This document shows positions 10,943-64,000 of a stretch of 64,000 nt of DNA, in pieces. The notes beneath the pieces were generated by a model, which made no database searches, was not told the DNA's origin, and saw only the letters and a list, made by a program, of their open reading frames with translations. Numbering within the stretch: the first letter of the stretch is position 1; every line of letters starts with the position of its first letter. A program made the translations under genes and the position numbers. Source of the DNA: Mytilus californianus (taxonomy: Eukaryota); assembly GCF_021869535.1 (NCBI RefSeq), contig NW_026262690.1, forward strand, positions 46,376,001 to 46,440,000, given 5' to 3'.

Positions 10943-11126
10943 TCATCGCGGACTCCAGTCGGATGAACGATTTTGTCTGTAAAGATTTGTATAAGATGGA
11001 GGATCACTTATGGTTGAAATTGGTGAGTGAACACTGGCTCGAATGTCACTTGGTGAAGCTGTACTTCTACTGAGTAGGGACCTGTCTGAACTAGTTGATG
11101 ATGGTCTTGATCGGGGTCCACGAACT
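10943..11126 (-). CDS. Gene B terminal exon: Ser/Arg/Pro-rich tail ...[20 protein letters not shown]
   Basis: tttttattcag acceptor, phase 2, 60 codons then TGA. Confidence 0.85.
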
Positions 11127-14100
11127 CTGAATAAAAAAAAAGATAGTTCAGTGAAACACTATGTTTAAGAGTAATTTCTTTCATACCTTATTTCAATCAG
11201 TCCTATTTTGTCCACCAAGATTTCTGGGAGAACCTAAGCGGTAAATAGGACGTTAAAAATTTAACGATAGTTTGTGTGAATGTTATTATTGATATTCATC
11301 AGATAGCGGTGTACAATGAATAAACACTAATAACAAAGACGAAGTTATAAAAGAACACGTATTCTGAGAGTATTGCATGGCAATACATAGTCCCCTGCCG
11401 GGTAAAAATTCATTTTACTGGAACAAAATGCTAACTTGTTCTATAACTTGTCATGGTGTAAACAAAAAGTAAATATCAGGTCAATATCTTCAAGCATGAC
11501 TAAAAACAGTGTGGACAACTGATTACATGAGTGAAAAAAACATTAGATATGATTAATAGTTCTCTAAAATTAGATATGATGTAATACAGTGTATATCTAT
11601 TTTCAAATTATAATCAAATATAATTAATAGTTCCAAATATTTTTTCTTTCATTTGTTACAAACTAATATAGATTTGTAGCTTATCTATAAAAGGTCAACA
11701 ACTTTTATCTACACAATGAAATGTATTGAAATATATACATTAATAAAAATAGATTATTATCATAATTTTTTTTATATCTATAGCATTCAGAAAATTAGTT
11801 TATACTAAATAACAAACACACCTGCCAAAAAAATCTTCAAATAATTTAACAAAGAATGCCTTTTAAAAAATGAGTTATCTCCCTTTGTACAGAAATATGG
11901 TTTAACATAGTACTCGAACATTAGATATGGTCCAGAGTTATGGTCCATAACTCTGGACTAAATCATCAGACCGGAACAAAATTCGAACTTGATCTATAAC
12001 TTGTCATGATAAAACTATGTATCAAATATCAAATCAATATCTTCAAGAACGAAGAAAAAAAGTGTGGAAAGCTGATTTGCCGGACTGACGGATGGACAGA
12101 TGGACAGATGGACAGACGGACAGACGGACGGACGAACGGAGTGCAAACCTAAAGTCCCTTCGACTTCGTCGGTAGGGGACTAAAAATGTGTGTTCAACGA
12201 ATTTATTCCAATATTTAATTAAACACAATAAAGTTAATGCAAATGTACATTATGACTAACAATTTTTGATATTGAATATCACATACCCGTCATTTTTATT
12301 GAAGCATCTTGGTCTGATAAGTTTATGCCAGAGAACACACAAAAGTAAACCTGTAGCTATTCCAATGGGTAGTCCAACAACACCGGCTATTAAATCATCT
12401 GTTGAAAACCCTTCTGTCTTAGGTTGTGGAAATGGTAACTTTACACGACGACCATTCAGTAAACACATACAGTGATTGTCATCATCAACACCACAACTCT
12501 GGTAGAAAACAGAAACATAAGTTAATAGTATGTATTAGATGTAAGCTTCTCATATCTGATGGGCGTTAGCTAGGAAGACATGAGACGATTACATCTGATT
12601 TACATGAAGTAATAAATAGATATTTTATCTTTTCTCTTGTTCTAAAAGAGCAATTAGTTGATAAAACAGGAAAAGTGTCATTACCTCAAATTTACCAGAT
12701 GCAGGGACACTTTCAGAAGATGTTTTGTAGTTATGGATTTGGAATGAAATCTTAATTTCGTCTATTTTTCTGTCATCATTTATCAATGCTTTTGTATGGC
12801 AATATGAATCGCTGTACTATCTTGTCTTTTTTGGGTTTAACTGCCAAAATCTGAAATTTTTGCTGATAAATGATAACACTTCTGTGTGAGATAAGATGAC
12901 ATTTGAAACTGCCCAGATGTACTGTGGATAGGGGATTTAAAAAAAGTATATGATAGGAATGTATTTGTAGGTTTTTTAATGACCTCCTTTAATTTAAGCA
13001 ATTTTCCATACTCAAAATCATCGTGACAAATCAGTAAATCATCAACAACAACAAATGTATGCAAATACGCTATTGAAATAGATATGGTGCAAATATTTGT
13101 AAAAATTATATTTGCACATGCGCTTAATTTGAGTCTTTTTTGTATTTGTTTTCCTTTTTTTAATACGATTTTAAATGTTCTTTAATTTTCAAATCTAATA
13201 TTTTCCATTATTATATTAGAGACGCAGTATGTATGAACTACAGTTATTTTAAGATTGAATGGATACTAGAAAAAAGAGGGTCCATGCACCAAGGGCCTGT
13301 ATTCTAAAGCACGAAAAATGAATATCTGACTGTCAATAATAAGAATCCAAGTAATCATTTTACCTCAGGTTGATATATTTCACAGTCTAGACCTATGTAC
13401 CCACTCGGACAGGAACATCTGTAACTATCTTTGTAGTTTGTACATACACCATTGTTAGCACATGGGTTTGGCTTACAAAAATCATGTGCTGTAAAAGAAG
13501 CGAAGAGTTTGTATTTATGGATAATAAATCACAAGATTAAAGAAATGTAAAATACATCAATTTTCGATACTAGTAATATAAAAGGTTTTTTTTTTTTAGC
13601 AATAATGGGTTTTCGGATTAATAGTAAGGATGTGTACGATTTGTATTGTGTTGTTTATAGTATATATATCTATAAAATGGGAAAATCATTAGTTTTACCT
13701 TAAACTATGCATTAACTTCTATATTATCAGGGTAAACATGGTTTTCGTTCTTTTTTTCTGTCACAGAAAAATCTATGGACACCGAACCTCTCCCTGTGCA
13801 ATGTAGAAGTCTGTCTTCAATGGAAGTTGGTGCTTATGATTATGTTAAATTTGTTCATTTTGAACAGTTTATATAAAAATATGGAGATCGTTTAGTTTAC
13901 TAGCGTTATCAATCATTGAAACTTCAAAAACTGAGCTATTTTGATAAATGTATGATGTAGATTATTTATGTGAACAAAACTTTCGACAACTACTAGCCAT
14001 CAAGCTAAGTTTTTTTTTACTAATAGTTTATGCTTTCTGGATTACAGTTGTCACTATTTTTTATTTCCAATGCTGTCAATATGTTTTGCACAGCAGCACT

Positions 14101-17100
14101 TATCAGAAAAAAGATAATTGCAGATTGTCGGATATAAGTCAGGGATCATTTTGAAAAAAAAAACATACTTACGAGTGCTACAGTTTTTGCCTTTGTATTC
14201 AATAGGACATTCGCAGAAGAAATCACCGACCATGTCTGTACAAGTCCCGCCGTTTTCACACGGGCTGCTGGCACACTCGTCCAAATCTGTGAATTTATGT
14301 ATATCTATGTTAAATTGAATAAAAAATGTTTGTGTATAGATATATACTTTTGTTATTAATTTTTGTAAACATTTTTAAAGACATTTTACTTTCCACCATT
14401 GATTTAAAAGTATCTTGAAACAACGTCATTGCAGTGTTTGTTAAATGATTCTTACCTATATTGCAGTTGTAACCAGTGTATCCAGGACCACACGAACAGG
14501 TATAACCTGTACTTGTTGATGTGCATGTTCCGAAGTTCTGACAAGGCGATGAGGCACAATAATCAATGGCTGCAAATAAGAGTAACATATAATTGTTTGT
14601 ATTGTTTAAACATGGTTCCTGCTAGTATTTTCTATGATTTAACGTCTTGTCCTATATACTTGATAATATAATCTTTGTTGTTAATAAGAAGTTGCCATTT
14701 ATTTATTTTATACAGCTAGAATTGATGAATGTCTTTTTTCAATACAATCGGACAATTCAAGCAGTCGGCAATCAGTCAAGCAACATAATCACGAATCATG
14801 CCTTGTAATAAGTTATTTCTGGATCATTCTTCCAAATTTTAGTAGTTTTTTTCATGTAGCTAACATGAAACCAGTATATTATAGGAACAAAATGTAGAGG
14901 TACTCACCTTGGCATTCGTTACCCATAAAACCAATTGGACAAAAACATTTATAATCACCAACTTGGTCCCAACAAGTGCCACCATTTTTACATGGAGAAC
15001 TTAAGCAATCATTAACATCTAAAAATATCAAAATGTGCATGAGTTATTACTGAAATATATGATAAATAAAAATGAAGCAAATTAGTAGACTAAATTGTAG
15101 TATTACTATTACTTGTCAGACACATATGTTTGTGTTTTAGGATAGAGAAATACTTTAACATATTCAATACAGGCGTTCTCATAATTAGTAAAATTATCAC
15201 AAAACATCACATAATAACATTGTAGCATCTAACCAATTTAATAATGTTTTAATGATTTTTCTTAAATTCTACTAATTTCTATGGCAGAGTTCCTTTCGTC
15301 ATTCAAATGTGTTATTATACTCATGAAATGTACAATTTACAAATAATAACTAATGTACCTATTGAACAGTTTCTGCCTTCATATTCCGGTGTACATGTGC
15401 ATACAAAGCTGTCCAACTGCACTTGACACGAACCTCCATGTTCACATGGGTTTGCCGTGCATGGGTCCTCCACTAAAATGATGATACAGTATCAATATTA
15501 TCAGTGATCTTGCACTAATAGTTTATATAGTAAAATCAAAGTTGATTTGGATGAAATTATGTATTTTTCTACTTTCAGCATTTGGTGTCGTTTACCCATA
15601 TACATCTTTTTTCATATAATGTTAGAATAACGCTTTATAAACTTGTTGCGTCCAAGTTGTTTGTTTGGATTAACCTTCATCAGAAACGCTCAAAACAAAA
15701 AAATCGAAAACCAATGATGTATGAGTTATAAATAATGGAGAAGCAACATAACCAAATGTGACATAAACAGAAGAGCCAACACAATCTAAGGTCAACTTTG
15801 GCTGATGGACTTGGAAACTTAGTTTCTAGGTAATTTCGAACTTTGTCGAAGGACTATTTATCTTTAAGGAATGCATGTCACGAGATTCTAACTTATGATA
15901 TAGAACTATGATCATATAGTATTCATTCGTATTACAGAGATCTGTAAAGTAACATACCTCCTGCTAAAAGTGTCAAACAATGTTGTTCGCTGTACAATCT
16001 GTTAAAAGAAAACAAATAGCAACTAGATTTTTTAAACTCTAGATTAAAATGATTTGTAACATATGTATTAATTTGATCCTCTCAACTGTCATGTTTAGTC
16101 GTCATATTTTCACATTTTGTTTATACATTTAAATAATTATGAGCTTATGTAACCATAATTGTATTGAAGCATTTTAAGTATTGCCAGCATGGTAAGCTTG
16201 AGGGTCAGCAAAATTTCTAAGAGCTTGTATCACACTCAGGGTAAAAACCCGAAAGTGACTGAAACATAGCCGATTTTAATACCAAACAGCGTAACTTTGA
16301 TACCTTTAATATTTTTCGACATTTTCCCATTGAGTCCATATAATTAAACTCTTATTCTAAACCATAAGGGTCAAACAAAAATTTCCGAAACAGTGTAAGG
16401 TAAACTTTACGTGAGGGAGTTATATCCTTATTCTAATAACGTTTATGACAAAGTTCCTGACTTACGGGACAGGCGCATACACTTGCCATTGGGTTAAACA
16501 AATCAAAATCCTAGACCGACGTCTTTCATTTACGACCACGTGCACAGTAAGACATATAATGGAGAATAAAAACGGGGAATGTGTCAAAGAGAAAACAATC
16601 CTACCAAAGTGCAGAAAACAGCACAAGGCCAATAATGGATCTTCAACGCAGCCAGAAAATTCCGCACCCGGAGCCGTGCTTCAGCTGGACACTAAACCAT
16701 AATGTATACTATTAGGAAAAAACAAAGGATATGGAGTATCCATCCATAACACAAAATCAGTATATAAACAGTAAAAAAAAAAACACTAAAAGCAAAGGAA
16801 CACCAAGATCATGACTACCCCTTTTACACTAAGAACTAACTGTCTGACTGGGATAAAGTTAACACGACCTTTTCAAGACCATCTTTAAAACAGCATAATG
16901 GCACTTACCCTCTATCGTCAACGGCCTGAAAACATATGATGTTTGTCGAGTATTGAATAGGTTTAGGTGTCCATGAAAACTCTGTGCTATATACCTGACC
17001 ACTTTCATTCTGTAATGGAGTATGTGCTGTGTCATATGGTACCGAGGTAACAATAGTTTGAATCCTGAAATAGATCGAAGTTGCATAAGTAGTAAAATTT

Positions 17101-20100
17101 AAGTACTAAAAAAAATCAATTAATTCCGTCGAGAAATCAGAATAATGCGCCTATAAATAAGAAATAATAAGGATGCAAGATACAATAGAAACCATAGGAA
17201 TATAACTCCATCAGCCTATAGTGGGTTAAAACATTGCATACAAGGTCAATCTGCAAAAATAATATCATGTTATTAATTTTTATTACTGTTTAGAACAACA
17301 GCAGTTTCCCCTGATATTATAACCCTTTTTTTCCAGATATGATAGTATACAAATATATCACCTATCATTTAATTCAATTACTGGATATGATAGGGTAAGC
17401 TTAAATCACTTAACAAATCCCAGTAACGACAAAATTTCAATGCAAACAATTTTGTCTTTTTTTTTAGTTTTTTTTTCTGTCACAACTTTACCTCACAGCT
17501 GGTGAATTAAATTTTGCGTATATTTTCTGTTTGAATGTGTCTCCTTTAGGAACAATAAACACTTGTCCATTTGGTGGAGTTGGGTTTTCTATTTGTGGAA
17601 TATCAGAACACGTTGTGGAAACTTTCACTGTCGTTACAACAAACTGGAAAGAAAGAAAAAAAAACAGCAGATAACATACGGCATTTTACTAAGAAAATAG
17701 CATGTTTATGTTGAATGTCAGATTATAATTTGTTATGAAGATTTGGAAGGTGGATCCCATTCAGACACATACCTGTAGTGGTACCTGACTCAGTGCAGTA
17801 TTTGGGTTAACAGTACTAGAACCAACTGTGATTGTGGTGTGTGGAGAATCTTCTACGGTCAACGTGATTATGTAGGTTCCATTATGGATAAATCCTGTAA
17901 CAGTCTTTGGTTGTATTGTTAAAATACATCTTTGCTGAAAACACAAGAAAAGAAAACGCATGCTTAGATAGGATGTGTATAAACGTTTCATATTCTACAA
18001 GAATATTTAATAAAAAAAAAACCAATACTCGATACCGTTGCTGGTGCAATATCAGTCCTCCAATAGCTCAGAAGTCAGTACTTCGTCACTGACATGATTT
18101 ATAACTTTTTAAAATTCTTCGTTGGTAAATTTAGAAAATTATTAGAAAACTTAGGTTCCAACTCCCTCAGGTAAACTAACCCTTATGTGGATTTGGTTAC
18201 TCTTTTTGTGTCCCTTTGATCATAGCAGTTTAATATTCAATAACTTATTACCCCATTAGGCTTCAAATTTTTGGGTATGAGCGTTCCTGATAATCTAGGA
18301 AAGCGCTTTATCGTCAAATTATCATCAAATTTATAAACTGTTATTTTCATCATTTAACCATTCGAATCTTAGTGCAATACAACCACTAAAAATAAAACAT
18401 TCGTCGTTCTGGTTTCCTTGCTGAAGCGAAATTGTCAGCTTAATATTCAATACAAACCGATGTCCTTTAAAGATTTCTAGCTAGGGTTTCGTGTGATTTT
18501 TTGCCTCTCTATCTCATCAACAATTCATGGACATAGTTACACTATGCTGAATACTTAACAGTCGAATATTTTAAAACATTTAATCTTATATTAATGCTTA
18601 CCGAATCTAGTTTTGATTCAGGTAGCCCATTACAAACGCCACCGCACTCTACACCAGCAGACCATCGACATGAGGTAACATCGCCATCCGGGTCATATAC
18701 TGGAAGCTGTATACTGGTAATACAGTCAAATGGTATTCTGGAATAACGAAAATGTTGTTAACTTCATCTCCATATGTATTAATTTGTGACCATTTGCTAG
18801 CTATAATACATTTTTGTTTTTGTTTGGTTTTGCGCATTGACAGCTTATTTTTACTTCGTTGAGTCATTATTTTATAAGACTGATATATTATATATATTTG
18901 TCTTTTTGGCTCCCAAATGTAAGAAAGATTATAAAATAATAGACGCATACGATCATGTAGACACAATAAACAAAAAACTATAAATAGTACCAAGGTTCTG
19001 TTCGTCTTTATTTTCGATCGAAATTCTTTTACGAAAGGGTAACAAACAAACAATGTCTGCATATATAATATACACGCTTTACAATTCGATTGACGACTAA
19101 AGAATTTTAACTCTAGCTAATCAAATAAGTCTGTGTGTAAAATGTCATTTCACAAAAACCTAGACCTCAGGTGGCCGATCTGTTAACAAATATTTGTACG
19201 TCAAGTCAAAGAATAGATTTGATTCCTCTGTAACTTTTTGAGATGAAAACTGGATCAATCAATAATACCGAGTATTACTTTTAAGATTGGTTTAGTCCGT
19301 TATAAATACAGTGGATCAATTAGAGGATATAACTTTTGCCATAATATATTAGAGCTACCATATTGCAATGTGAATAAATTAGAGTTTGCTTTTTACAGTT
19401 CTTTGGCACACAAAAAAAAAAAACAACCTTGAACAGAGTATACTGTTTTTTATATAACAGACGGTGCTTATTTGATGTTTTTTCTCAACAAATGCAATAC
19501 CTAGATTAAACACTAAACCCCAGATAATAAAACTTCTGCAATATACATGTATTTCAGCTTATAGGTTTCACTTCCTCAAATCTTTTTGACATCTAACATT
19601 GATATTAGACTTCTTTTTTTCAAAAATAGTATTATCATGTATTTCTGTATCACTCGTAACTTAATACTTTTACCTTAAATGAAACTTAAACACATCTCAT
19701 AATTTAAAAAAGCTTTTGTAATTAAACAGACATCAAATTAACCAAAACAAAATTCACATATGTACACTTTTTAAAGAATCATATGATCTGGACCATAACA
19801 TATCAATGCCAGATTGCTGGGAAAAGATGAATATATCTTATGACTGCCAAACGGTCAATACCAATTTTAGTGGGTTTTAAGTCCTTGAAGATATTATTCA
19901 AACGGTATATTATGATGTTGTCTCTATAAAAAAAAATGAACGTAAGTTCATTGTGTAAATCTTAAATCTTCATTTTTTTTCAGGCAAACAGTTTCATATG
20001 TTTTTGTTATATTTCAAACCTTTTTTTAGATCATCTTCCAAAAGATATCACGGTTTTAAACATCATTAACTTTGCAAGTTGTGAATCAGTTTGGGTCAAA

Positions 20101-23100
20101 CCTAGACTGAATAACACTGAGGTAGTCTATTGTCAATGGAATATGCTGGATGAACGTACAAATAAAGATGATTTAACAAACGTTTACCCTGCAGATGAAT
20201 TGGCACTCGTTATAGCTGAAAAAGTTTTCGCGACCAAATCAGAAAACGGTGGTACTTTAATGGAAACTATTGGCGAAATATTGTATAAATTCTTATAAAA
20301 AATGTATTCCTCCGGATTTGATCCGAAAAATTCCTGGGTGGTTCATTTCAGTCCACTAAATGATCATTGAGACATCATGCAAAACAGTTTTACAAAGGCT
20401 ATTATGAAATATATATACAATTGGAAATCAATCTGGCCTAAAATATCCTCAACCATAGTTACAGTAATAGGCAAAGGACAACTAATTTTACCCAATATAA
20501 AAATGAGGAGATGTGGTATGATTGCCAATGAGACCACTATCCACCAAAGTTCAAATGAAGTGGATGTAAACAATGATATGCAACCGTACGGACTTCAACA
20601 ATGAGAGAAACCCATACCGTATAATCGGCTATAAAAGACCCTATCATGAAAGATATGAAACAATTCAAATGAGAAAACTAAAGGCCTGGTTAATAACAAA
20701 ACAATTTACGAAAAAAATATGACAGACATGAACCAACGACAACTTCTGAACTACAGCCCCTGACTTGGGACAGGCACATAAAGAATGTGGCGGGGAAAAC
20801 ATGTTTGAAGGCGCCAACCTCTCATAACCCGGGACAGTGGTAAAACAGTACAACATAATAACAAACTATAAAAATCAGTTGAAAAGCTAGAGAGTGGAGG
20901 GGGTACTAGTATATAGTTATTCACCTGTCAGTCCGTCCGTCCATTAGTCATTTTTGTTCCTAATACTTTCATATACAATGTACTTTATATCGGATTGCAA
21001 CCCTACTTGGATTTATGTTCATATATGTATTGAGAGAAAGATTTATACTGAATTTGAGGTCAAACACTCAAAGGTCAATGTCATGATTACTAATAGAAAA
21101 TAGACCACAATTTGTACAAAAGCGGTTTTCGAATGGTAAATCAAAAACTTCATATGGGTTGCAACCTTACTTAAGGGTGTGTGTTCGCATATAATTAAAG
21201 GAAGATCCCAATTGATTTATGAGGTCATTACCCCAAAGGTGAATTTCAATGTTACTAAAGATAGACCAAATTTTGTGCAGAAAAATGGTTAAAAGATACT
21301 TAATAAAACTAATGATAGGTATGAAACCTTAGTGGTCATATATAGTTAAGAGGAATATCCCTATTAATTTTAAGGTCAAATATTTCAAAGTTCAAAGTCA
21401 TAATTACTAAGAAATAGACCGCAATTTGTGCCGTGGTGATTTCTAAATGCTAAATCATACAAAAACATTTATGATTTCAGTTTAAGGTAAAGAATCAAGG
21501 CCATTAGTTAATCAAAATGAAATGAGTGACATTATCTTTACAAACAATATATCATTAGCTAGAATGTTTGACTGAACAAAGTAAAATACAATAACAATTA
21601 CCTTTAAGTCAAAGGTCAAGGTCATAGGAAGACTAATATGACACTTTATGATTGTTAAATAAAAATCACCGTTTGAAATCAAAATGGACATTGATTATTA
21701 CATTGAAGGAGTATATCACAAAGCCAGTTAAGAAAATATGTTTGTGAAATTCTGTTATTGCGGTTCAAAATTGTATCGGATGACTCCCATCGACTCACCA
21801 AAATTGCCACGTAAATAAAAAGAAAAAAAAAAAAAAAAAAAAACAGTCAATAGTTATATATCATGGTATTTAGTTTATAGTATTATATGGAAAGTTGTAT
21901 GTACTTTTTTCTTCTTCAGCCAAAGCTAAAGAAAAATCCAAATGTCAAAAGATAAGTAGAACCTTATGGATACAATCTTATCTGTTTGATAGTTGAATGA
22001 CTAGAATCATTTTACTCACTGATACTTAGGTAACGAGGATGTTACTGGAGACGAATTTGGTCGCTTTGTATCACTTCTTATTCTGAGGTCAATAGTTGTT
22101 TGGATGTAAACATTTCCCGTTGATCCATAGTCGTGGTGTATCCAAGGATTCCCAGTATACCTAAAAGTATAATAAAAAATTTCACAATCTAATCTTAATT
22201 CATAAAACCTTACCAGATTTAATTAAGAACATTCGATAAAAATAGAAAATTAGCTATTTTCTGATGCTAACAGTCTTTCTTCGTATATACAAAGACGTTA
22301 TCTTCTACTAAGAAACAGTGTCGCTTTTCTGGTCGTCGTGAATACTTTTTCGACTATATTCATAGCTGTAACAATTTTCAGTTGTTTTCGTAGGTCTACA
22401 TCGTTTGCTTTCAGCGTTTTTTTTTATCGGATATCTTGTCTACTATCATTGCTGAACTACGAAGATATTTTTACTATCAATGATAAACCACGAAGGTTCG
22501 TTGTTCAGCTTTCATGGTTCAGGTTCAGGTTCGTGGTTCAGCAATGAATATCCGTTTAAAAACGTTGAAAGCAAATATGGACCTACGAAGGCTTATATCA
22601 TAGGACTAGTCTTTAAATATAAGAACACAAAAAAAATGTGGAATGACCATCAATGAATCTGCGAATAAAAAAATAAATGAAAAGACAAGTACTCACGACA
22701 CTATGAACTTGCCAGATGATGGAAATGTGTGACTGATGAATTCGTCACCTTGCTCCCAATCAGACTTTGAGTAAGATGCACAATGATAATTGAGATCTCC
22801 GTAAGTGATGTTCTGTGAAGGTGTACATCCGTGTGTACAGGCAAGACTATTACCTCCGACCAAACCACTAGCAAACGAACCAACAGGAACTGTGTCACCA
22901 CAACCAGGGCCTTTACCATACTGGAAACCATAACGTCCATGGAGGTTTACCTAACAAATCCGACAGAAAAAAATCGAATTCTATATTTTATCAGTATATT
23001 TCTATTAATCCTATAACTATTCTAATGGCTTTCATTTTGTCATCAGGCAATCTACTCCTGGCTTAATTTCAAATTTTTAATTGTGTTTTAACCGTCTAAG

Positions 23101-23994
23101 ATTATTTTAAAAGACCGTATAAATATAGTGCATGGTTATAAGTAATCTTCACCTACATTTTTGCTTCATATTTCATATGATTATTCCTAATAAATATTGT
23201 GAAGGTATTCGAATTTGATTTTTTACCAAGCAGGTGTTGAAAATCGCAGAATTGTTTGAATTCTAAATAATTATTTATTCTTTATTTTTTTTACATTTTG
23301 TTGAAAAAAATATAGAAAATTTCTGGACAAATTCAACATTGGGGTTTATGACTGTTCACATCTTTATACTATAGTCTATGGATAGTGGTCTCATGGTCAA
23401 TTATACCACATATCCCTTATCTTTATATTTATCGAGCAGATGCTTCTTATCTGTAAAATCTTTTAACCTTTTAATTTTGCAGCGTTGTTACAATGGAATA
23501 TTATTGTTGAAACGAAAAAAAGTTCTGGTTAAAATTTATTTCTCGTCGTTTACATCGATACCATTTGATATTCAGGGGAGGGGGAAAGGGAGGGGGTTGG
23601 ACTGAATATTCATTTTTACCTATTGCAAGACTCGCATATTTTTTTTTGGTTCTTAATTTTCTACCCAATAATTTCCTGCAGCTTGCTGTATTTAGGGAGT
23701 CAGAATAATCATTTTCATCCTGTCTTCGGAAAGATTATTCATCTTCAATTCTTACCATGTCGGACTTCAATTTCAAAATCCTCCTGTCAATGTTACTTAA
23801 AACAAAATAAAGTAGGGAATATTTCATAACTGAACACCTAACTCATCAATTGAACGTTTTCATTTTCATCTAGAATTTACCTGAGTGTTTAGTGGTAAGC
23901 CTATTGGTTCCCAACTCACAGTTCCACCTAGAAAATTGGCAAAAATTACTCGAAAATTCACTCCAACAAAAACAAGAAATGCTGTTAAATTCAT
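10943..23994 (-). CDS. Gene B (complete, 15 coding exons, 709 aa): signal peptide + Sib/integrin-beta-like-protein ectodomain + 5 EGF + Cx7CxC + TM + cytoplasmic tail
   Basis: All 15 exons have GT-AG boundaries with matching phases and join into one ORF (2130 nt incl. stop) from ATG at 23994 to TGA at 10943. Confidence 0.9.
11370..12185 (-). mobile_element. HINE/DINE-1-type element in the last intron of gene B
   Basis: TTTTTAGTCCCCTACCG 5' subTIR, (GTCC/GTCT)n microsatellite, CGGCAGGGGACTA 3' subTIR and GTATTGCCATGCAATAC hairpin. Confidence 0.8.
12287..12498 (-). CDS. Gene B Cx7CxC + transmembrane exon: [14 protein letters not shown]...[29 protein letters not shown]
   Basis: ctaccag / gtatgt, phase 0-2; hydrophobic helix followed by basic residues. 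Confidence 0.9.
13364..13488 (-). CDS. Gene B EGF 5 + linker: [41 protein letters not shown]
   Basis: ttacag / gtaaaa, phase 1-0. Confidence 0.9.
14173..14286 (-). CDS. Gene B EGF 4 (cbEGF): [38 protein letters not shown]
   Basis: 114 bp, phase 1-1; in ORF 14054-14284. Confidence 0.93.
14456..14569 (-). CDS. Gene B EGF 3: [39 protein letters not shown]
   Basis: 114 bp, phase 1-1; in ORF 14310-14588. Confidence 0.93.
   Translation of the reverse strand, partial: PLIIVPHRLVRTSEHAHQQVQVIPVRVVLDTLVTTAI
14908..15018 (-). CDS. Gene B EGF 2: [38 protein letters not shown]
   Basis: 111 bp, phase 1-1, ag / gtgagt. Confidence 0.92.
15359..15472 (-). CDS. Gene B EGF 1: [39 protein letters not shown]
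   Basis: 114 bp, phase 1-1, six-Cys EGF spacing. Confidence 0.92.
   Translation of the reverse strand, partial: WRTHARQTHVNMEVRVKCSWTALYAHVHRNMKAETVQ
15958..15998 (-). CDS. Gene B exon 8 (41 bp): [13 protein letters not shown]
   Basis: ttttaacag / gtatgt; supplies the required phase 2 to phase 1 bridge into the EGF exons. Confidence 0.8.
16909..17064 (-). CDS. Gene B exon 7: IQTIVTSVP...[23 protein letters not shown]
   Basis: tttcag / gtaagt, phase 2-2, WTP...ICFQA motif. Confidence 0.88.
17492..17643 (-). CDS. Gene B exon 6: [26 protein letters not shown]...KFNSPAV
   Basis: ttccag / gtaaag, phase 0-2. Confidence 0.85.
17773..17934 (-). CDS. Gene B exon 5: [10 protein letters not shown]...[13 protein letters not shown]...ALSQVPLQ
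   Basis: tttcag / gtatgt, phase 0-0; also in ORF 17761-17991. Confidence 0.9.
18602..18737 (-). CDS. Gene B exon 4: [45 protein letters not shown]
   Basis: ttccag / gtaagc, phase 2-0, carries the DPDGD..CRW...ECGGVC motif. Confidence 0.9.
19777..20298 (+). pseudogene. Candidate two-exon antisense coding remnant in gene B intron 3 (19777-19941 and 20030-20298), product unidentified
   Basis: Phase-matched C|gtaagt...tttttttag|AT intron. The downstream exon is about 89 open codons and protein-like; the upstream exon has an in-frame TAA at 19878. Confidence 0.35.
20501..20885. repeat. Abundant interspersed repeat (agatgtggtatgattgccaatgagac... family); related copies at about 8331-8710 (inverted), 25310-25735, 26530-26715, 47670-47745 and 51490-51530
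   Basis: Multiple homologous copies in both orientations. Confidence 0.75.
20890..21660 (+). mobile_element. Degraded HINE-like element with (GTCC)n head and ggtcaaaggtcaa internal repeats
   Basis: Microsatellite head and recurring internal units; termini eroded. Confidence 0.45.
22020..22160 (-). CDS. Gene B exon 3: YTGNPWIHH...[25 protein letters not shown]
   Basis: ttttag / gtgagt, phase 2-2, carries the RSDT..PNSSP motif. Confidence 0.9.
22697..22950 (-). CDS. Gene B exon 2: [19 protein letters not shown]...[31 protein letters not shown]
   Basis: ttgttag acceptor, gtgagt donor, phase 0-2, open frame. Confidence 0.9.
23881..23994 (-). CDS. Gene B exon 1: [38 protein letters not shown] (signal peptide + FxGGTVSW motif)
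   Basis: ATG, hydrophobic N-terminus, CAG|gtaaat donor, phase 0. Confidence 0.85.
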
Positions 23995-26060
23995 ATTTGT
24001 GACACAATATCCAACTGACCAAAGTTTTACGGATGCAATTTTCCCTTTCTATCTGCTATATATTACCAATATAATATATCTGTAGGTAATATACAGTTAT
24101 CAAGTAATTTAAATCCTTTGATGAAAGTGATTCTTCTACTGACTACGATAATTTGTCTATCTGTTTAAATACAACAGTGATAAGTTTGTACGGGTGCCAA
24201 GAGGTGTTGACAATGTAAAAGCTCAGAACGACTGTAAATTTAAATGTAACTGAAAGTTGGTCAAGTTATGTGTTATAAAATAACCACGTTTTCTGTATCA
24301 ACAAGTTTGCCTAATAATTGCTTATTCCCCAAATCAGATTTATCAATTCACATGGATATGGTTCTTCCCAGTCTTTACAATATTCCAATAGAACTAGAAA
24401 TTGAGAAGAGTTCTAAACCTTTCTGTTAGATACGAGCTAATTCAACGATTATAAAAAATGTAACTGTTAGATGTGAAAACTCTGATGAATGATACCAGGA
24501 ATCGAACATTTCTATTTGGAAAGTCCAACTTCCTGGTGGATATGTGTTTTGGAAAGAGACCAATCGAACAGAAATGATATTTCAACTTGCTTACATCTTT
24601 ATTTCTTACCACGAGTCACATGTTTGTTACAACTTTACATGTATGCGGAAAGACATTTATTTCAGCGTGCTTTCTGGTTAGAGTTTGGTGGTTGTCTTTC
24701 CTGCAACACACGGTATTGTGGGTGAAATTTTGGTATAATTTTTCTGACGACGACGGCGGCGTTAATAATTTGCAGATACTCTTATATCCCCATGTTATCT
24801 AGGTTAAGAAATGTACAAAAGTGGTTCATCGCGAGACCTTGTCACCATTCATTGTCACCTGATATTGACCTCATTTTCACGACCTATCGGTCAGATTAAA
24901 TATCCAGTCTTCAATTTATCTCTCATGTGTACTTACAAAATAAATCGTGAAAAAATTAAGGCGAAGATGTTTAACGAAGTCATTTCAATTTGTTTTCTTC
25001 TTAAAATAAGATATTTGTCAGATGTTGAACGTGTCTTATTGAAACCCATTGCATATTACTATCACAGCAATCAACGCCAGTTTTCCATTTTGGTATGAAA
25101 AAAACAGCATATGCCTCAGTGACCCACTGTATTGAGTGAAATTATTTATTTCTCCGAGGGATTAAACGAATTAAATAAACTCTTTGCAGTTGATATCTGT
25201 GTAACTTAACTAATGGCCATAATTGTTCTTCCAATCGAACACTTTTGGTTTATCTGAAATTATTTTGTTTTTATTTTCCAAACAAAACATAAGAGACAAA
25301 GTTAGCAGTTGATTGTCAATGAGACACCTTTCCACCAGAGTCAAAATGATGTGGATGTAAGCAACAATAGGTCAGCGAACGACTATCAACAATGAGCAAA
25401 ACCAATACTGTATAGTCGGCTATAAAAGGCCCCGACATGACAAATTATGAAACAGTCTAAACGAAACGAGAAAACCAACGGTCTGATTTATGACAAAACA
25501 ATTAACGAAAAAACAAATATGACAGACAGCAATTATCGACAACAACTCAATTCCAGGCTCCTCGCCTTGGACAGGCACATAAAGAATGCAAAGGGCTAAA
25601 CATGTTTGTGAGCGCCCAATCCTCCTATAACCCAGGAAAGTGGTGTAACTAGACGATTTGTTTATGTTTTGATCTTATAAAAACAAGAGGATGTGGTATG
25701 ATTGCCAATAAGACAACTATCCAGAGTTCAAATGACTTAGACAGTTTTGGGTTTCAATCCTAGACGGGTTTAGCTTTTTTGTTAAGGTCATTTGATTTCA
25801 AGTTTCAGAACGTTTTATGTATTTTAATGATACTAAATTTTTAATCTTGCACTAATTGAAAATAGATTTTTTCAAAAACGAGGTCTGGTGACAGTAAAGA
25901 AAGATGTAAAAAAAGGTTTTGGTAAATTTTTTTATGAAAAAGTTTTTTTTTATTTCAATCTAGGCACATGGTGATGTTTCAAACTAGAAACTGTCCTCGA
26001 CAATAGTTGTCTTGGTGTTAATATTAATAACTTTTAAAAAGTTCTTTTTGTGTCACAACA

Positions 26061-26478
26061 TGTCCACACTTAAGGTACGTTCAGCTTGTCCACACTGAAG
26101 GTATGTACAGCTTGTCCACACTGAAGGTACGTTCAGCTTGTCCACACTGAATGTATGTATAGCTTGTCCACACTGAAGGTATGTACAGCTTGTCCACACT
26201 GAATGTATGTATAGCTTGTCCACACTGAAGGTATGTACAGCTTGTCCACACTGAAGGTACGTTCAGCTTGTCCACACTGAAGGTATGTACAGCTTGTCCA
26301 CACTGAAGGTACGTTCAGCTTGTCCACACTGAAGGTATGTACAGCGTGTCCACACTGAAGGTACGTTCAGCTTGTCCACCCTGAAGGTATGTACAGCTTG
26401 TCCACACTGAAGGTACGTTCAGCTTGTCCACACTGAAGGTATGTACAGCTTGTCCACACTGAAGGTATGTACAGCTTG
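26061..26478. repeat. 26-bp minisatellite, 16 copies (tgtccacactgaaggtatgtacagct)
   Basis: Direct reading; it produces the 26-aa-periodic spurious ORFs at 26081-26579. Confidence 0.95.
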
Positions 26479-29400
26479 ACAAATGTTATGAACGCTGATA
26501 TTATAAAGAATGAAAAAAAAACCAGTTTAATATAAAAATAAGAAGATGTGGTATGATTGCCAATGAGACAATTCTCCACAAGACACCAAATGACATAGAA
26601 GTTTAAAACTATGGGTCACCGCACGACCTTCAAAAATGAGCAAAATCCATACCGCATAGTCAGCTATAAAAGGCCTCGAAATAAAAAATGTACAACAATT
26701 CAAAAGAGAAAACTCAGATCTACCTCCAAAAAATAAAATACAACAATTCGTGCTATGTTATATACGCTTCTTTATTTTCTATTTCTATTTTTTTCTTACT
26801 GTTTTTCTTTTTGTAATTCAATCCTTAAATGTTCAATAGTCTTGTTTTGATTTATAATTGATTTTGTGTCACTCACTTATGTACTCAATTTTCTCAACAA
26901 TAAACGAATATATTTTACTTACTTAAATGACTTCCTAGTATATAAACGATAAATACAAATGTGAAAAAATCCACTCAGTAAATATCTGTTTTTATATATA
27001 TATATTTTTGGGCTTCTTGACTAAAACTGTCAGACGACTCCCTTAAATGGTGATACTGTACAAACATTTAAAAAAAAAGGAATTATAGAAAATATTTCAT
27101 GGGGATATAACTTTTAGAAATCAGAAGATTCGAAGTGAAAGTTTGTATCATAAAATCTTAAACACCGTTTCAGTTAGAGAGCACATGACAATATCAGACG
27201 ACTTGTTTTAAGAGTGATTGTCCTTTTGTGACGAATTTAATCCTTTCTAGCGTTTTTTTCCTATTCTATTTTAATAGATTGATGGAAACTTGAAATAGTA
27301 AAAGCGATAAGCAAAACAAGATCTACAAATTAGTTGAACTGCTGAAATGGTCATTCGACTCCTTTTAAGAATTCTTGCTTTTTTTGCTATACCTTTGAAA
27401 ACAATAATAATGTAGAGAATTAGCTTTTGAAAATAACAAATGACCAGCAAGACAAGATCCACAAATCAGTAAATGACAGAAATCTGTTGTTGACCTCTCA
27501 TTGGAATTATTAGCTTTAAGTGATGATTTATATCCATTTTTGCGTTTTTGTCTTAGTAGATAGAGAGAAACTTTAAACAGTAAAAAGTACGATCAACAAG
27601 ATAACTTTATAAAGTCAGTCCAAATAGCTGAAGTCATTTCATATTCTATAGTGGTCAGTCGAATCCTTATTGGAGTTAACGCCTTTAATTAATATTTTGA
27701 CAAATTTTCCGGACATTATGTAGTTTTTTCAATAATTAGTGTGAAAAATATAATAGATAAACCGAAACTTCGAACAGCAAAAACGATCAGCAAGACAATG
27801 TCTTCACAGAAGTCAATATGACTGAAGTCGTCAATCGACTGCTTACATGAGCTGTCTCCACGAAATCACATTTTTAACCCATTTTTTTCATTTTGCCTAT
27901 CATCTTGAAAGTCTAAATGGATAGGCGAAAACCTCTGTCCAGCAGAAATGATCAACCAGACAAAATTTTAAATTGGCCCATATAGTTTACATTCAACACA
28001 AATATTTTGTAGTTGCATTGTATGTATTTTGTGCAATTATACCAGATAACCGATACCGGGTCACTGGAGCCTCTATGTTTTACACAAGTTCAACTTCGAG
28101 AGGTTAATATGACGTTGGAAAACATTTCGAGAATTACTTGTTTTAAATTTGGCACACCACCACAGCAGTCTCGTGGTAGCATGCTCGTTAAATAGAAAAG
28201 ACTAAACGGCTCGGAGTCTGACAAATGTGTCCCTAAGGTAACATCTCTTTCTGTGGAGTGATACACTGTGAGGTTGCATTTGAAAAAATTGGCTTGGTGT
28301 GTCCAGCTAGTACACCAGGGTTCATAATATTGTCACTAACATGCCATCGTCTTGAAAAAGGCTGAATAATTACGTTTCACATGCATCGATTTGTTCCTTG
28401 TTTTTTCGTATATTGAAATATAATCATACATTTGAATTATTTCCAGAAAAGAACATTTGCTTGCATCTTTTATGTCGTCTAATAGTTTAGAGAATTTAAA
28501 TTTGAGTGGTTTTGGTAGGAATGTTCATAATCACAGCTTTTCTTAATAAGTCTTAAACAAACTAAACTTAATGCTTGTAATGAGATCTAAAATAGGTAAT
28601 GTAATCAACAAGAAACGGAGTCCTAAATCCTGATGATGTACATACATTTATGAAAATGCAGTCGTAGAAAATACTCCATGGAAACATATCATTTATATAT
28701 CAGAAGATTCGAAGTAAAATTTTGAACCATAAGTCTGAAGATCCTTTAATTAAAGCATGAGCTCACACGAAGCAGATTGATCAAAACTAAAAGGAAGGAA
28801 ACCCAAGTAACCCAAATTAACATTTCAATTTGACGGGAAATTTTCGAATTCTATTGATTCTTAAGGTCAATTACTCATAAACCATTTTATGTATACACCG
28901 ACAAGTTGAAATGAAGTACTGTGTTCGCACAAGTTTTGCTCGTATGCCAGTATAAGTATACACAAATGAATTATGATCTTCCTCTTCCTACATGTATAAC
29001 ACTCTCTTCAATTGATAACCAATAAAAATTAAAAATTATTGATTGACTGGATATTTCACATTGGTTAATCGTTAATCTATAGAACTAGGAAGTCATGTAT
29101 GTAAATAAAACAGGTTCTTTGGTTGTTGAGAAAGTTAAGTAGATAAGTTGGACTAAAACGTAAAATCAATTACAAATCAAATAAAACAACACTTGCGGGT
29201 GGTATTCTAAAGCATTTAACTTTTTAAATGAGAATGATAAAACCGTAAGAAGAAAGGAAATAGAAAATAAAGAAGAGCTTATAACATGACACAACATCGC
29301 ATGAATTGTTGTATTTCAATATTGTATACTGTAAATTCATTTAAAAAGAGCCCAATATTCGTATGGATTTGGAATTCTAGAAACCTCCGAAATTTTCCGA

Positions 29401-31038
29401 ATGCATTGCTGTATTTTAATCTGTAAGGTCATTAGTGAAGAGTCAAATATTCGTATTGACCAGAAAAGTATTTTTGAAACGTCTAGACACATGCGCACTT
29501 TTTGTCTGCCGACAACAGGTTGATTTCTTTGTTTCAGACAAATTTTTGTCATGTTAGAAAATAATCCTTTCGACTTCGAGCTGACTTATTTTTTACCATC
29601 TTCACTTGAAAATGATATAAGATTATTCAATGACTGGTTCTATAGAAGGTAGACTCCTTTCTTACTGTCAGCTGACTTTAACTTATCTAGCAGACAATTT
29701 TTACAAAGAGAGGTCGACTTTAGACATTTGTAATATCATAATGTATTGTGTTTAGCAGCCCAAATGTTTAGATTTACTCGAAGAACATATTGATAACTTT
29801 TGTATGAAGATCCCTTTACTCTAATCTGGTAAAAATGGAACAGTTTAGTCTAGATTTTTTTCTTGAGTTGCCTGAGGGTTACATACATATTAGAGAACCT
29901 AATTAAATGAAATATGATTAGAGTATTGTATCATTGATCATTTGACGGATTTCATGTTAATCATTAAAACATTTTATCATATTTAAAAAGGTACTGTAAG
30001 GCGATGGATAGCAGCGTTGGTAAGTTTATCCAGTACGAATTGTTGCAGATATTTGCATAATAAAGCAATGAAAAAGGAGAAAATAAATTAAGACAGTAGT
30101 TTTATAGTGATAGGTAATCAAAATATCATTTATTAGGATATGAATTTTCGTATCTTGATTTTCTAAAGACAAGACTTTTTTAAATAGTTTACAATGTTCT
30201 CTTTCGTTTTATTCAAGATAATCATTGAACATTTAACAGTATTCGGCACGTTAGTGACTAAGGAATGGTGATAAGCTCAAAGTAGTCTATCTAAATAGAT
30301 ATAATAATTAATAAGTTGCTTCCTGTCATAAAACGTTTAAAAAACACTTTAAGTATTGATGTCTATTTACCAATGAATTATCGCTTATTTCAGTGCCTCT
30401 TAAAAGAATTTGTCATCTGCGCAGATAATTTTCCATGTAAATATTATCAAAATAGAAACCACTGTAACTGATTGGAGAAGATACCAATAAATGCGTATTA
30501 TATCCATAAATAGGTATCAATTTTCAGTGATATCAAAATAATTTTATATTTCACAATAATGTCTGTCATGGCACATACATTCATGTTAATGGCAACAGTT
30601 CCCTCTGTGGGATCATAGTTCAAATGAAAACTGAAAAAAATAAGTGGCCTCTAAAATATTTCTTTTTTTGAAGATCATTAAGTTTTCTACAGATGAAATT
30701 TCAGTCATGGTGTCTTTTGTCATCATGTTGTCCTTTACATGGATGTTTGCACAATGACAGCAAATATAAAAAAAATCCAAAGTTCCATTTTATCACTGAA
30801 AATTAAACCACTAGCCTAACGTTTTTCCTCTATGATATTTTCCTATTAAGCAAAGTCAGGATGAAGAACGACAATAAAAGAGCTGTTCCTTTGATATTAT
30901 TTATCAAACACATCCGTGTCATCTTTTTCTGTTCTACATCAATAGCAATAAACATGTTTGTTTATAGCCGATCTTTTCCTTTCCGTTGAATTTCTTCGAT
31001 TTTTTTTAAGACACGGAGCGATATAGAGCTTGAAATAA

Positions 31039-31970
31039 TGTAAAATTGAGAATGGAAATGGGGAATGTGTCAAAGAGACAACAACCCGACCATAGAGCAG
31101 ACAACAGCCGAAGGCCACCAATGGGTCTGCAATGCAGCGAGAAACTCCCGCACCCGGAGGCGTCCTTCAGCTGGCCCCTAAACAAATATGTATACTAGTT
31201 GTGTGATCCTGGACGTCATACTAAACTCCAAATTATACACAAGAAACTAAAATTAAAAATGATACAAGACTAACAAAGGCCAGAGGCTCCTGACTTGGGA
31301 CAGGCGCAAAAATGCGGCGGGGTTAAACATGTTTTTTGAGATCTCAACCCTCCCCCTATACCTCTAGCCAATGTAGAAAAAACAAACGTACAACAGTACG
31401 CACAGTAAAACTCAGTTTAAGAGAAGTCCGAGTCCGATGTCAGAATAGGAAACACAAGAAAATAAACAAAATGACAATAATACATAAATAACAACGGACT
31501 ACTAGCAGTTACTGACATGCCAGCTCCAGACCTCAATTAAACTGATTGAAAGATTATGTCTTCATCATATGAATATCAGGCACAATCCCTCCTGTTAGGG
31601 GTTTAGTATTATACCATCATAAAATATATGAGAAGAACATAACCCGTGTCATGCCAACAACTGGTTTTAGAACAAATATGTTTAATTCCGGTGCAAAGAC
31701 CCTATAAGTGAATCAATATTAAAGCCAAAATATGCAATCTTTAATGACCTGACAACAGCATCGTAACTATATCCCTTCTTAATAAGTCTGTTTAAAGGTT
31801 TTGTTAGCTTTTGAGGTGAATACTGACATTTTTGTGCTTTGTAAAGAATATTACCATAAAAGATTGGATGTGAAATACCCGAACGTATAAGATGTCTGCA
31901 TGTCGAGTTATATTTACGAATGATGTCCTTACACCGATGATAAAATTTAGTAAATGTTTTGACTAGTTTA
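31039..31970. repeat. Interspersed repeat, long copy (gtaaaattgagaatggaaatggggaatgtgtc...); a partial copy lies at about 16560-16710
   Basis: Homology between the two copies within the window. Confidence 0.7.
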
Positions 31971-33286
31971 TGATATCGAAAACTTGTATCTTGTATCTTG
32001 CACTTGTATCTGATTATTGTCGAAGACTGTATGTCTCTCCTCTTTAGTGTCGTTGGATTGCTGTCTCATTGACGTATAACCCACATTTCCTACTATTCAT
32101 ATCTTAAATGCAAATTCTGTGTACACGTATTATTTTTTTAGTATAACCTTTTGACATGCTTGATAATTTTTGGGAAGCAAATACATTAAACGATTCACCA
32201 ACACTCAGAGCGCCGAAACAGTACAGCTACTATAAACTTAGATCCTCCCTACATCAGTATTTTACAACTTAAGCCTTAAAACTACTACATATTTTACCAA
32301 CTGAAAATTTATAGTGAAAAAGTATCATTAAATTCATACAAGTACCTAACAACTGCTACGGGGTGATGTTATTCTTCGAGACTCATAGTTCATCCACAGA
32401 AGTAGTGGTATGTTACACATTTCAGTGTACTCGACAAGTGTGTCAAGTATAATCTTCATCAGATGATTTTGAACCCCAAAATATAAACGTTTTAAGAGTA
32501 TGACAACCTATATGACCCTAGAAATTGGAACAACCCGGACAAGATAATCACTGGCGTAGGAGCCGGGAGGGGGCAATGGGAACAATCCCCCCCCATTTTG
32601 GCCTACAAAATTCATTAAATATAAAAAAATAAAATGGAAGAGAACACTGACTAACTTCTAGATTATAAGACTATAGAAACTTTTGTTGTGTTTTTTGCTT
32701 GTCACTTTAGAAGTTTGCCACTACTTAAATCAGTCTGCTCCTACGCCATTGAAAATGGAACAGTAGCAAAATGTGTAACGATTTTCTGTAGCCTGAATGC
32801 AAGCAAACGAAAAAGCCTTGAAATATAATTTGCTGTCTGAACAAACATAGTTCCGTTCTTCTTTTCCTTCATTTATTATCAATAAACTGATTGTATACGA
32901 ATATGAATGGAATGTGCTCCTAACTACATTAACATGTGACTAAAAGTCAGCAGTTTTAATGCATGCATGCGTTTCTAGTGTACATGCAACAGAAAAGTAT
33001 GCTTAAACACATTTTTACAAGTGGTCAGAACCGTAGAAAAACTGCTGAACATCCTATCATGAAAACGATCCAATATATTCGCACTTGTTAAATAAATTGA
33101 AAAAGGCTACCCAATATCAATATACATGTATCTAGAAAATGCAATAAAATAACAAACGTGTAGCTTATTTACAGTGAAACAAACCAAGGCTAATAACTAT
33201 ACATAGAATAATAAATTTTTGTTCGGATACAATATAAAATGTGGTAAACAGCATATAACTATTATTAACAGTTTGTTCCGTTGTTT

Positions 33287-62934
<29,648 letters not shown>

Positions 62935-64000
62935 CTGAAAAATAAAAATGATTGTCACCAAGTATGAAATTGAAGATTGATAAATTATCGGGGGATACCA
63001 ATTTTCCTGGATTTCCCGTATAGGGTGATACATCGATTTTAAATAATAGACGACATAACGAATCTTAGCTACATTATTAAAAGTAAATAATAAAAGCACG
63101 AACTAAGGTACCGCCGAAATAGTGAGCTTTTTACGAATCAGACTTTCTACCAAGGAAATAAAGGAATCCATGGTAACACGAATATTGAAACTTGTAAATC
63201 TGGAAATATCTATCTGGGGAAGAATGATCTCTCAGAGCCATGACCGATCGGAAATATAACACTGAACGAATAAACAAAGGGAACATTTATGAACCATAAA
63301 GAAGGGGAAGCATTAGTTTAACGAAATTCAAATACAGTAAATCCTTTAGAAATTATAAATCAGATTAATAAACTTAGGTAATTGAATCAATTTCAAATGA
63401 GCGAAAGTAGATATGTTAATAGGGTGAGTTTCTACTGATAAGCATGCAAAAACCTCGATGTGACTCTAAATTCGGACAAAACTAATTTCTCAATAAGGAA
63501 TATGACATATTCTGTAAATTTACCGTTCAGACAACTATTCTGGTATCTAAAGATATAAGACGGCGAAAATATATCACTTATATCACTTATGGGATTAGAT
63601 GCGAATGGAATTTGATTCGACTGTCATACAAGTGAGAGGTTTAGCGCTATAAAACCAGGTTCAATCCACTATTTTCTACATTTGAAAATGCCTGTACCAA
63701 GTCAGGAATATGACAGTTGTTGTCCATTCGTTTGATGTGTTTTAATATTTGATTTTGCCATTTGATTAGGGACTTTCCTTTTGAATTTTCCTCGGAGTTC
63801 AGTATTTTTGTGATTTTACTTTTTAGACACAGACAATGTATCAGTCAAGCAATAAGTCGATGAAAGACAGACAGACTAAATCAGGTCAAATTAAAGGCGA
63901 AAAGATAAATAACGTTTTAACAAAAGCACTACACAATACATTAAATAAGTAAAGGAAGTACAAACTGATAGTAGAACATCCCAAAAATAAAGCCAAAATG

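Follow-up and report, generated by a model that had tools for sequence, protein, structure and literature searches.

Two tandem genes for EGF-repeat membrane proteins in Mytilus californianus and the likely relationship of their membrane anchors

Introduction

A stretch of 64,000 nucleotides of the Mytilus californianus genome (the window) contains two genes of EGF-repeat proteins, A and B, which a sequence-only reading had regarded as a tandem pair of receptors with a common membrane-proximal cassette and EGF stalks of very different length. The question raised by this locus is whether A and B are indeed two genes, whether their anchors descend from one ancestral cassette, and whether they belong to a set of receptors that vary in length.

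Organisation of the locus

The window is AT-rich (GC about 32%) and contains no N runs. A regular expression and ORF scan of the whole window found EGF-like reading frames on the minus strand without exception. The two genes lie head to tail on this strand, as had been proposed, with the stop codon of A at 33287-33289 and the ATG of B at 23994, so that B is located downstream of A behind a spacer of 9.3 kb, in which one repeat was found:

26061-26478, no strand assigned: 26-nt tandem repeat, about 16 copies, 91% matches

The sequence-only reading had also predicted further paralogues nearby; tblastn and a regular expression scan found no third paralogue, no head-like exon outside B and no extra cassette within the window.

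Gene A

A regular expression and splice site scan identified 28 exons inside the window that carry one EGF each, the first at 62934-62821 and the last at 34254-34124, which bears out the at least 26 repeats counted from the sequence alone. These exons are 111-117 nt long, of phase 1-1 and bordered by AG and GT, the exceptions being the donor of A17 and the phase of A28 (1-0). The features of A are as follows:

42313-62934, minus strand: EGF exons A1-A24, one calcium-binding-type EGF per exon (regular expression, splice sites, Pfam EGF/hEGF)
49348-49461, minus strand: dead EGF exon A17, frame intact, donor GA instead of GT
35206-36166, minus strand: EGF exons A25-A27, one-to-one in five relatives
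34124-34254, minus strand: A28, last EGF and 8-residue linker, not calcium-binding, phase 1-0; linker identical in relatives
33287-33658, minus strand: terminal exon, phase 0, with x-C-x7-C-x-C, glycine-rich transmembrane (TM) segment, tail of about 66 aa, TNIYR, final DW and stop
32872-32965, minus strand: candidate polyadenylation signals (ATTAAA from 32960, AATAAA from 32877; motif match only)

The same GA donor is present at the counterpart of A17 in Mytilus galloprovincialis, where the exon has decayed; the death of this exon predates the split of the two species, and 27 of the 28 exons in the window are live, leaving the stalk one repeat shorter.

The six-cysteine EGF pattern was found in all 33 EGF exons of A and B, and each of the ten that were tested with Pfam (five of A and five of B) passed PF00008 with 31.7-40.3 bits against a cut-off of 21.5 (hEGF is PF12661). 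The calcium-binding signature, defined as N-terminal D/N-x-D/N-E/Q-C together with an Asx and an aromatic residue located between Cys3 and Cys4, is carried by A1-A27, B2 and B4 and absent from A28, B1, B3 and B5; the scores of the Pfam EGF_CA model are below its own cut-off. Consensus sites for O-glucose, O-fucose and O-GlcNAc of the Notch type occur in most of A1-A27, and A28 carries none.

The terminal exon encodes 123 aa, including the tail with TNIYR and, directly before the stop, HDW, and is conserved in at least six other sequences, including those of Mytilus species. Nucleotide similarity to relatives does not extend beyond the borders of this exon, for which pN/pS is 0.12-0.23. In the C-terminal part of A that lies within the window, hydrophobicity peaks only at the TM segment. 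Judging from the gene calls of congeners, which give 2,608-3,260 aa, A is far longer than the window shows, with approximately 1,400 residues encoded beyond position 64000.

Gene B

Gene B was assembled from 15 exons with phase-consistent GT-AG sites into a single open frame of 2,100 nt, encoding 699 aa in the order signal peptide, head of about 355 aa, five EGFs, linker of six residues, x-C-x7-C-x-C, glycine-rich TM segment and tail:

23881-23994, minus strand: exon 1, ATG, signal peptide, head start F-L-G-G-T-V-S-W
15958-22920, minus strand: span of head exons E2-E8, phase-consistent GT-AG; all present in the ENA orthologue with 50-74% identity
22920-22697, minus strand: head exon E2
22160-22020, minus strand: head exon E3
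18737-18602, minus strand: head exon E4
17934-17773, minus strand: head exon E5
17643-17492, minus strand: head exon E6
17064-16909, minus strand: head exon E7
15998-15958, minus strand: head exon E8
13364-15472, minus strand: span of the five EGF exons (Pfam and regular expression)
15472-15359, minus strand: EGF exon B1
15018-14908, minus strand: EGF exon B2, calcium-binding type
14569-14456, minus strand: EGF exon B3
14286-14173, minus strand: EGF exon B4, calcium-binding type
13488-13364, minus strand: EGF exon B5, phase 1-0, with the 6-residue linker
12287-12498, minus strand: TM exon, x-C-x7-C-x-C and glycine-rich TM segment; phase 0 at its start, phase 2 at its end
10943-11126, minus strand: last exon, Ser-rich tail, TNLYR and DW; stop at 10945-10943

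The number of EGF exons is exactly five, as stated by the sequence-only reading, and hydrophobicity peaks are limited to the signal peptide and the TM segment. The tail motifs are encoded in an exon of their own, attached by a phase-2 join that is the only one keeping the frame open; the resulting Ser-rich tail has 74 residues and ends with TNLYR and DWSPR, DW being three residues before the stop. The joined spliced models of the two genes were used for the frame check, for shuffles, for tblastn against fetched loci and for hhalign, while Pfam and PDB searches used single exons. The mature head, which contains 12 cysteines and four N-glycosylation sites, is probably composed of three modules and unclassified: its exons gave no match in exon-wise searches of Pfam and PDB, apart from one sub-threshold PKD-like hint, and a word search with E2 returned zero candidates.

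An orthologue of B with all 15 exons and likewise five EGFs was found in the 284-kb ENA contig ctg47028. It keeps the ATG, the hydrophobic leader, the F-L-[GS]-G-T-V-S-W motif and the donor of exon 1; in that contig, no A exon was found within 3 kb of B exon 1 and no called gene in the 10 kb upstream. The TM exon shows 71-94% identity to its counterparts in three relatives and a pN/pS of 0.16; in the tail, two relatives retain N-x-Y-R and S-[ST]-D-W, and the remainder drifts (pN/pS 0.49).

Probable separateness of the two genes and public gene models

Three observations indicate that A and B are separate genes: B starts with an ATG and a signal peptide of its own, which are conserved in a relative; the terminal exon and stop of A are kept in at least six other sequences; and the public annotations of M. 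galloprovincialis and Mytilus edulis have CDS models (3,260 and 2,608 aa) that end exactly at the A stop. A and B are probably distinct tandem genes, both conserved and each encoding a type I membrane glycoprotein of a mussel. The pair as observed is real and conserved, yet ordinary for molluscs.

Another possibility is that A and B form one complex transcription unit, in which read-through from A28 to exon 2 of B would yield a giant product whose head is internal, the TM exon of A serving as an alternative 3' end. The CDS calls of this genome (3,141 aa) and of Mytilus trossulus (4,479 aa) continue beyond the A stop, as a joined model of both genes would. The donor of A28 and the acceptor of B exon 2 are both of phase 0, and the arithmetic of lengths fits, 3,141 minus 661 (B without exon 1) being 2,480 and the 2,608 of M. 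edulis minus 123 (the terminal exon) being 2,485. However, such a join would lose the first strand of the head and the signal peptide of B, both of which are conserved with the ATG in the relative, the stop and terminal exon of A are under purifying selection, and the 9.3-kb spacer with its satellite lies between the genes; the calls of the two congeners ending at the A stop also stand against it. Automated annotation pipelines frequently fuse tandem paralogues. Read-through is improbable and, since the lengths 2,480 and 2,485 agree and both phases are 0, the 3,141-aa model is read as an automated fusion: the annotations of this genome and of M. trossulus have probably merged the two genes, linking A minus its terminal exon to exon 2 and all later exons of B.

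Origin of the two membrane anchors

The C-terminal parts of the two separate genes were described by the sequence-only reading as alike in four respects, and each of these was found in both. The last EGF exon with its linker is of phase 1-0 (A 34254-34124, B 13488-13364); the next exon is of phase 0 and starts with x-C-x7-C-x-C (A from 33658, B from 12498); the TM segment contains GxxxG; and the tail has TN[IL]YR and DW (TNIYR and HDW-stop in A, TNLYR and DWSPR-stop in B). In both genes the intron lies one residue before the first cysteine. The set of features proposed for the cassette, namely the phase 1-0 last EGF exon, phase-0 x-C-x7-C-x-C, glycine-rich TM segment, [TV]N-x-YR and near-terminal DW, is complete in A and B. 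Six A-type and three B-type sequences retain every one of the following: Cx7CxC followed by [ML]-L, the glycine-rich TM segment, a cytosolic cysteine, [TV]N-x-YR and the near-terminal DW; the surrounding tail drifts.

The alignment statistics are weaker. The sequence-only reading had named a non-significant alignment of the Cx7CxC-TM part as an argument against the relationship, and the support from alignment is marginal: pairwise comparison was not significant, with BLASTP E-values of 0.016 (Cys motif only) and 0.28 (tail) and a p of about 0.1 in a shuffle test of the cassette alignment, and profile-profile comparison by hhalign gave P of 0.012 for the TM exons and, for the joined cassettes, 0.009 in local and 0.003 in global mode, with all features in register. 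In segment-preserving shuffles of B the three motifs appear together with a frequency of about 3e-7, a value to be read with the fact that the motifs were chosen post hoc. A tblastn search of the window gave no cross-match between the two cassettes at E<1, a library-wide phmmer search with the terminal exon of A retrieved only its own orthologue and one repeat artefact, and Pfam and PDB searches with both anchor exons yielded nothing usable. A28 and B5 were considered as specific counterparts and rejected, not being reciprocal best EGFs.

The resemblance might be explained by chance or convergence, A and B being unrelated neighbouring EGF-repeat membrane proteins. This would agree with the marginal alignment statistics, with the choice of motifs after both sequences had been seen, with the terminal EGFs of A and B showing no specific relation, and with the structural differences of the tails, which comprise an extra intron in B and a 12-residue insertion in A between NxYR and DW. 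On the other hand, five collinear features together with identical intron phase and position, each conserved in the orthologues of both genes, a global profile alignment with P of 0.003, and the adjacency of A and B on the same strand speak against it, and this explanation is considered unlikely. Since the relatives of both genes retain each of the motifs, distant paralogy is likely, though not proven. The claim that A and B are paralogues was thus partly upheld: conservation of the motifs within orthologues and profiles in register (P 0.003-0.012) speak for it, while pairwise similarity is marginal and the terminal EGFs are not best matches. Judging from the sequences, common descent of the two cassettes seems quite likely. 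Both cassette types are also present in one distant run, SRR26215656, with 67-71% identity to the sequences of the window; the split between them must be old, because both already occur in a relative of such low identity.

Evolution of the EGF stalk and a possible variable-length family

The EGFs within A are 50-89% identical to each other. A1 and A2 resemble A6 and A7 (74% and 89% identity), which points to duplication of a two-exon block. Since its introns can no longer be aligned, the duplications in A are old. A recent segmental duplication inside A was sought as well and rejected, only exon-limited similarity and mobile-element repeats being found. The proposed expansion of the stalk by exon duplication therefore holds in part: symmetric one-EGF exons, one block duplication (A1-A2/A6-A7) and one exon death agree with it, and the duplications concerned are old ones.

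Variation of EGF number between species was not seen in the visible parts of the genes. A18-A28 and the terminal exon each have a single counterpart in four other Mytilus species, as do A26-A28 in a more distant relative, and the B orthologue also has five EGFs, so the examined parts are stable rather than hypervariable. Public product lengths for the A orthologue across Mytilus are 2,608, 3,260 and 4,479 aa, plus one split call of 1,697 and 262 aa; the differences of about 650 aa between calls could stem from genuine changes by whole blocks in the part upstream of the window, or from noise in the annotations.

These lengths bear on the full reading proposed from the sequence alone, in which A would carry at its N-terminus the same putatively Sib-like head as B, so that a variable-length receptor set would hold one head close to the membrane or far from it (5 and 50 or more EGFs). 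The cassette common to A and B fits such a set, as do the differences of about 650-680 aa, or roughly 17-18 EGFs, between A products of different species, and the approximately 1,400 aa of A upstream of the window leave room for a head and many EGFs. Yet no head-like exon was found outside B within the window, B keeps five EGFs in a relative whose TM exon is about 80% identical, each of A18-A28 has one counterpart in four species, and the differences in call length may be artefacts of annotation or assembly. EGF-only giant proteins without a special head are common. This reading is considered rather unlikely. Still more speculative, and in our opinion improbable, is a single receptor family in which A and B have a common signalling cassette and head on stalks of 5 and of 50 or more rigid EGFs, with length steps of about 17 EGFs between species, as a graded molecular ruler for surface recognition; if true, such a ruler would serve an animal relying on innate immunity.

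The reading preferred here is that of two separate genes with probably related anchors and stalks that are stable in the examined parts. Gene A probably encodes a giant rod made of calcium-binding EGF repeats of the Notch type (27 live and one dead exon in the window). At its membrane end the rod has an EGF that lacks the calcium-binding signature, followed by a short juxtamembrane segment with three cysteines, a glycine-rich TM helix and the tail of about 66 residues. The 699 aa of B comprise a signal peptide, a head probably of three modules, five EGFs and an anchor of the same kind as in A. The two anchors most likely arose from one ancestral cassette, as suggested by the exon phases, Cx7CxC, glycine-rich TM segment, cytosolic cysteine, [TV]N-x-YR and near-terminal DW. 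From their architecture, A and B might be cell-surface receptors for adhesion or recognition, in which the head of B or the EGF rod of A could bind ligands, calcium may stiffen the EGF stalk, and the conserved tyrosine motif with the terminal DW might dock a common cytosolic partner. The EGF arrays probably grew by duplication of symmetric phase 1-1 exons, with shrinkage possible through the death of splice sites, and are stable among Mytilus species in the parts examined.

Comparison with known systems

In their long arrays of EGFs of about 38 residues, encoded one per symmetric phase 1-1 exon, in type I topology, and in the calcium-binding signature and O-glucose, O-fucose and O-GlcNAc consensus sites on most EGFs, these proteins are similar to Notch, Crumbs and fibropellin-type proteins. 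The anchor is different, being a short lineage-restricted cassette without a Pfam family. Unlike Notch, A and B have no LNR, NRR, RAM or ankyrin parts behind the EGFs; the last EGF leads directly to the Cx7CxC-TM exon and a tail of 66-74 aa with no Pfam match.

The Sib proteins of Dictyostelium ('similar to integrin beta') have type I topology, a glycine-rich TM segment and a short, conserved cytosolic tail that carries a tyrosine motif. Their features include a pair of talin-binding NPxY motifs in this tail and an extracellular VWA domain (PMC9197732). A and B are like Sib in the single TM peak, the glycine-rich TM segment with GxxxG, and the short conserved tail with a tyrosine motif, but an EGF stalk such as theirs is not among the Sib features named in that work (PMC9197732). 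The NPxY feature of the Sib tail is missing, as no NP.Y was found in B or in the C-terminal part of A, and the head exons of B gave no VWA match in an exon-by-exon search, B having no MIDAS D-x-S-x-S. The tail of integrin beta-3 ends with a T-N-I-T-Y-R-like stretch, which is superficially like TNIYR; compared with integrin beta tails, however, the motif of the mussel proteins has one residue less (N-x-Y instead of N-x-x-Y) and comes without a membrane-proximal NPxY and without an integrin beta ectodomain. DNER and DLK1 resemble B in layout (few EGFs, one TM segment, short tail with a tyrosine motif), while B has in front of its EGFs an unclassified head of about 355 residues.

The pair consists of lineage-specific EGF-repeat membrane proteins whose gene models are already present in public annotations of congeners and is not a new kind of system; because these models exist, its novelty is modest. 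The locus is a clean example of change in EGF stalk length, with symmetric exons, one block duplication and one exon death by donor mutation common to two species. If the cassette is truly a shared module, it would be an unstudied mussel-restricted anchor and tail, and a handle for finding the whole receptor family and its cytosolic partner.

Nested genes and repeats in introns

One intron of A contains two further genes:

36167-42312, minus strand: A24-A25 intron, about 6 kb, housing two intronless B-box/NHL (TRIM-like) genes
36914-38410, plus strand: B-box/NHL gene 1, intronless, tail to tail with gene 2
40013-41560, minus strand: B-box/NHL gene 2, intronless, tail to tail with gene 1

The TRIM-like proteins have orthologues with at least 90% identity in M. 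edulis, M. galloprovincialis, Mytilus coruscus and M. trossulus, and their genes occupy the same intron in these four species.

Introns of A also contain repeats. A CT/GA-type microsatellite (54301-54360) directly follows the donor of A10, and two sets of dispersed repeats with 81-92% identity, probably fragments of mobile elements, were found at 43143-43482 and 62259-62593, and at 36293-36484, 39662-39767 and 63637-63825. In the ENA orthologue of B, the intron between EGF1 and EGF2 contains two tandem ORFs of about 346 aa (L004, 1660-2700 and 3321-4364), which are absent from the window and probably represent the insertion of a mobile element.
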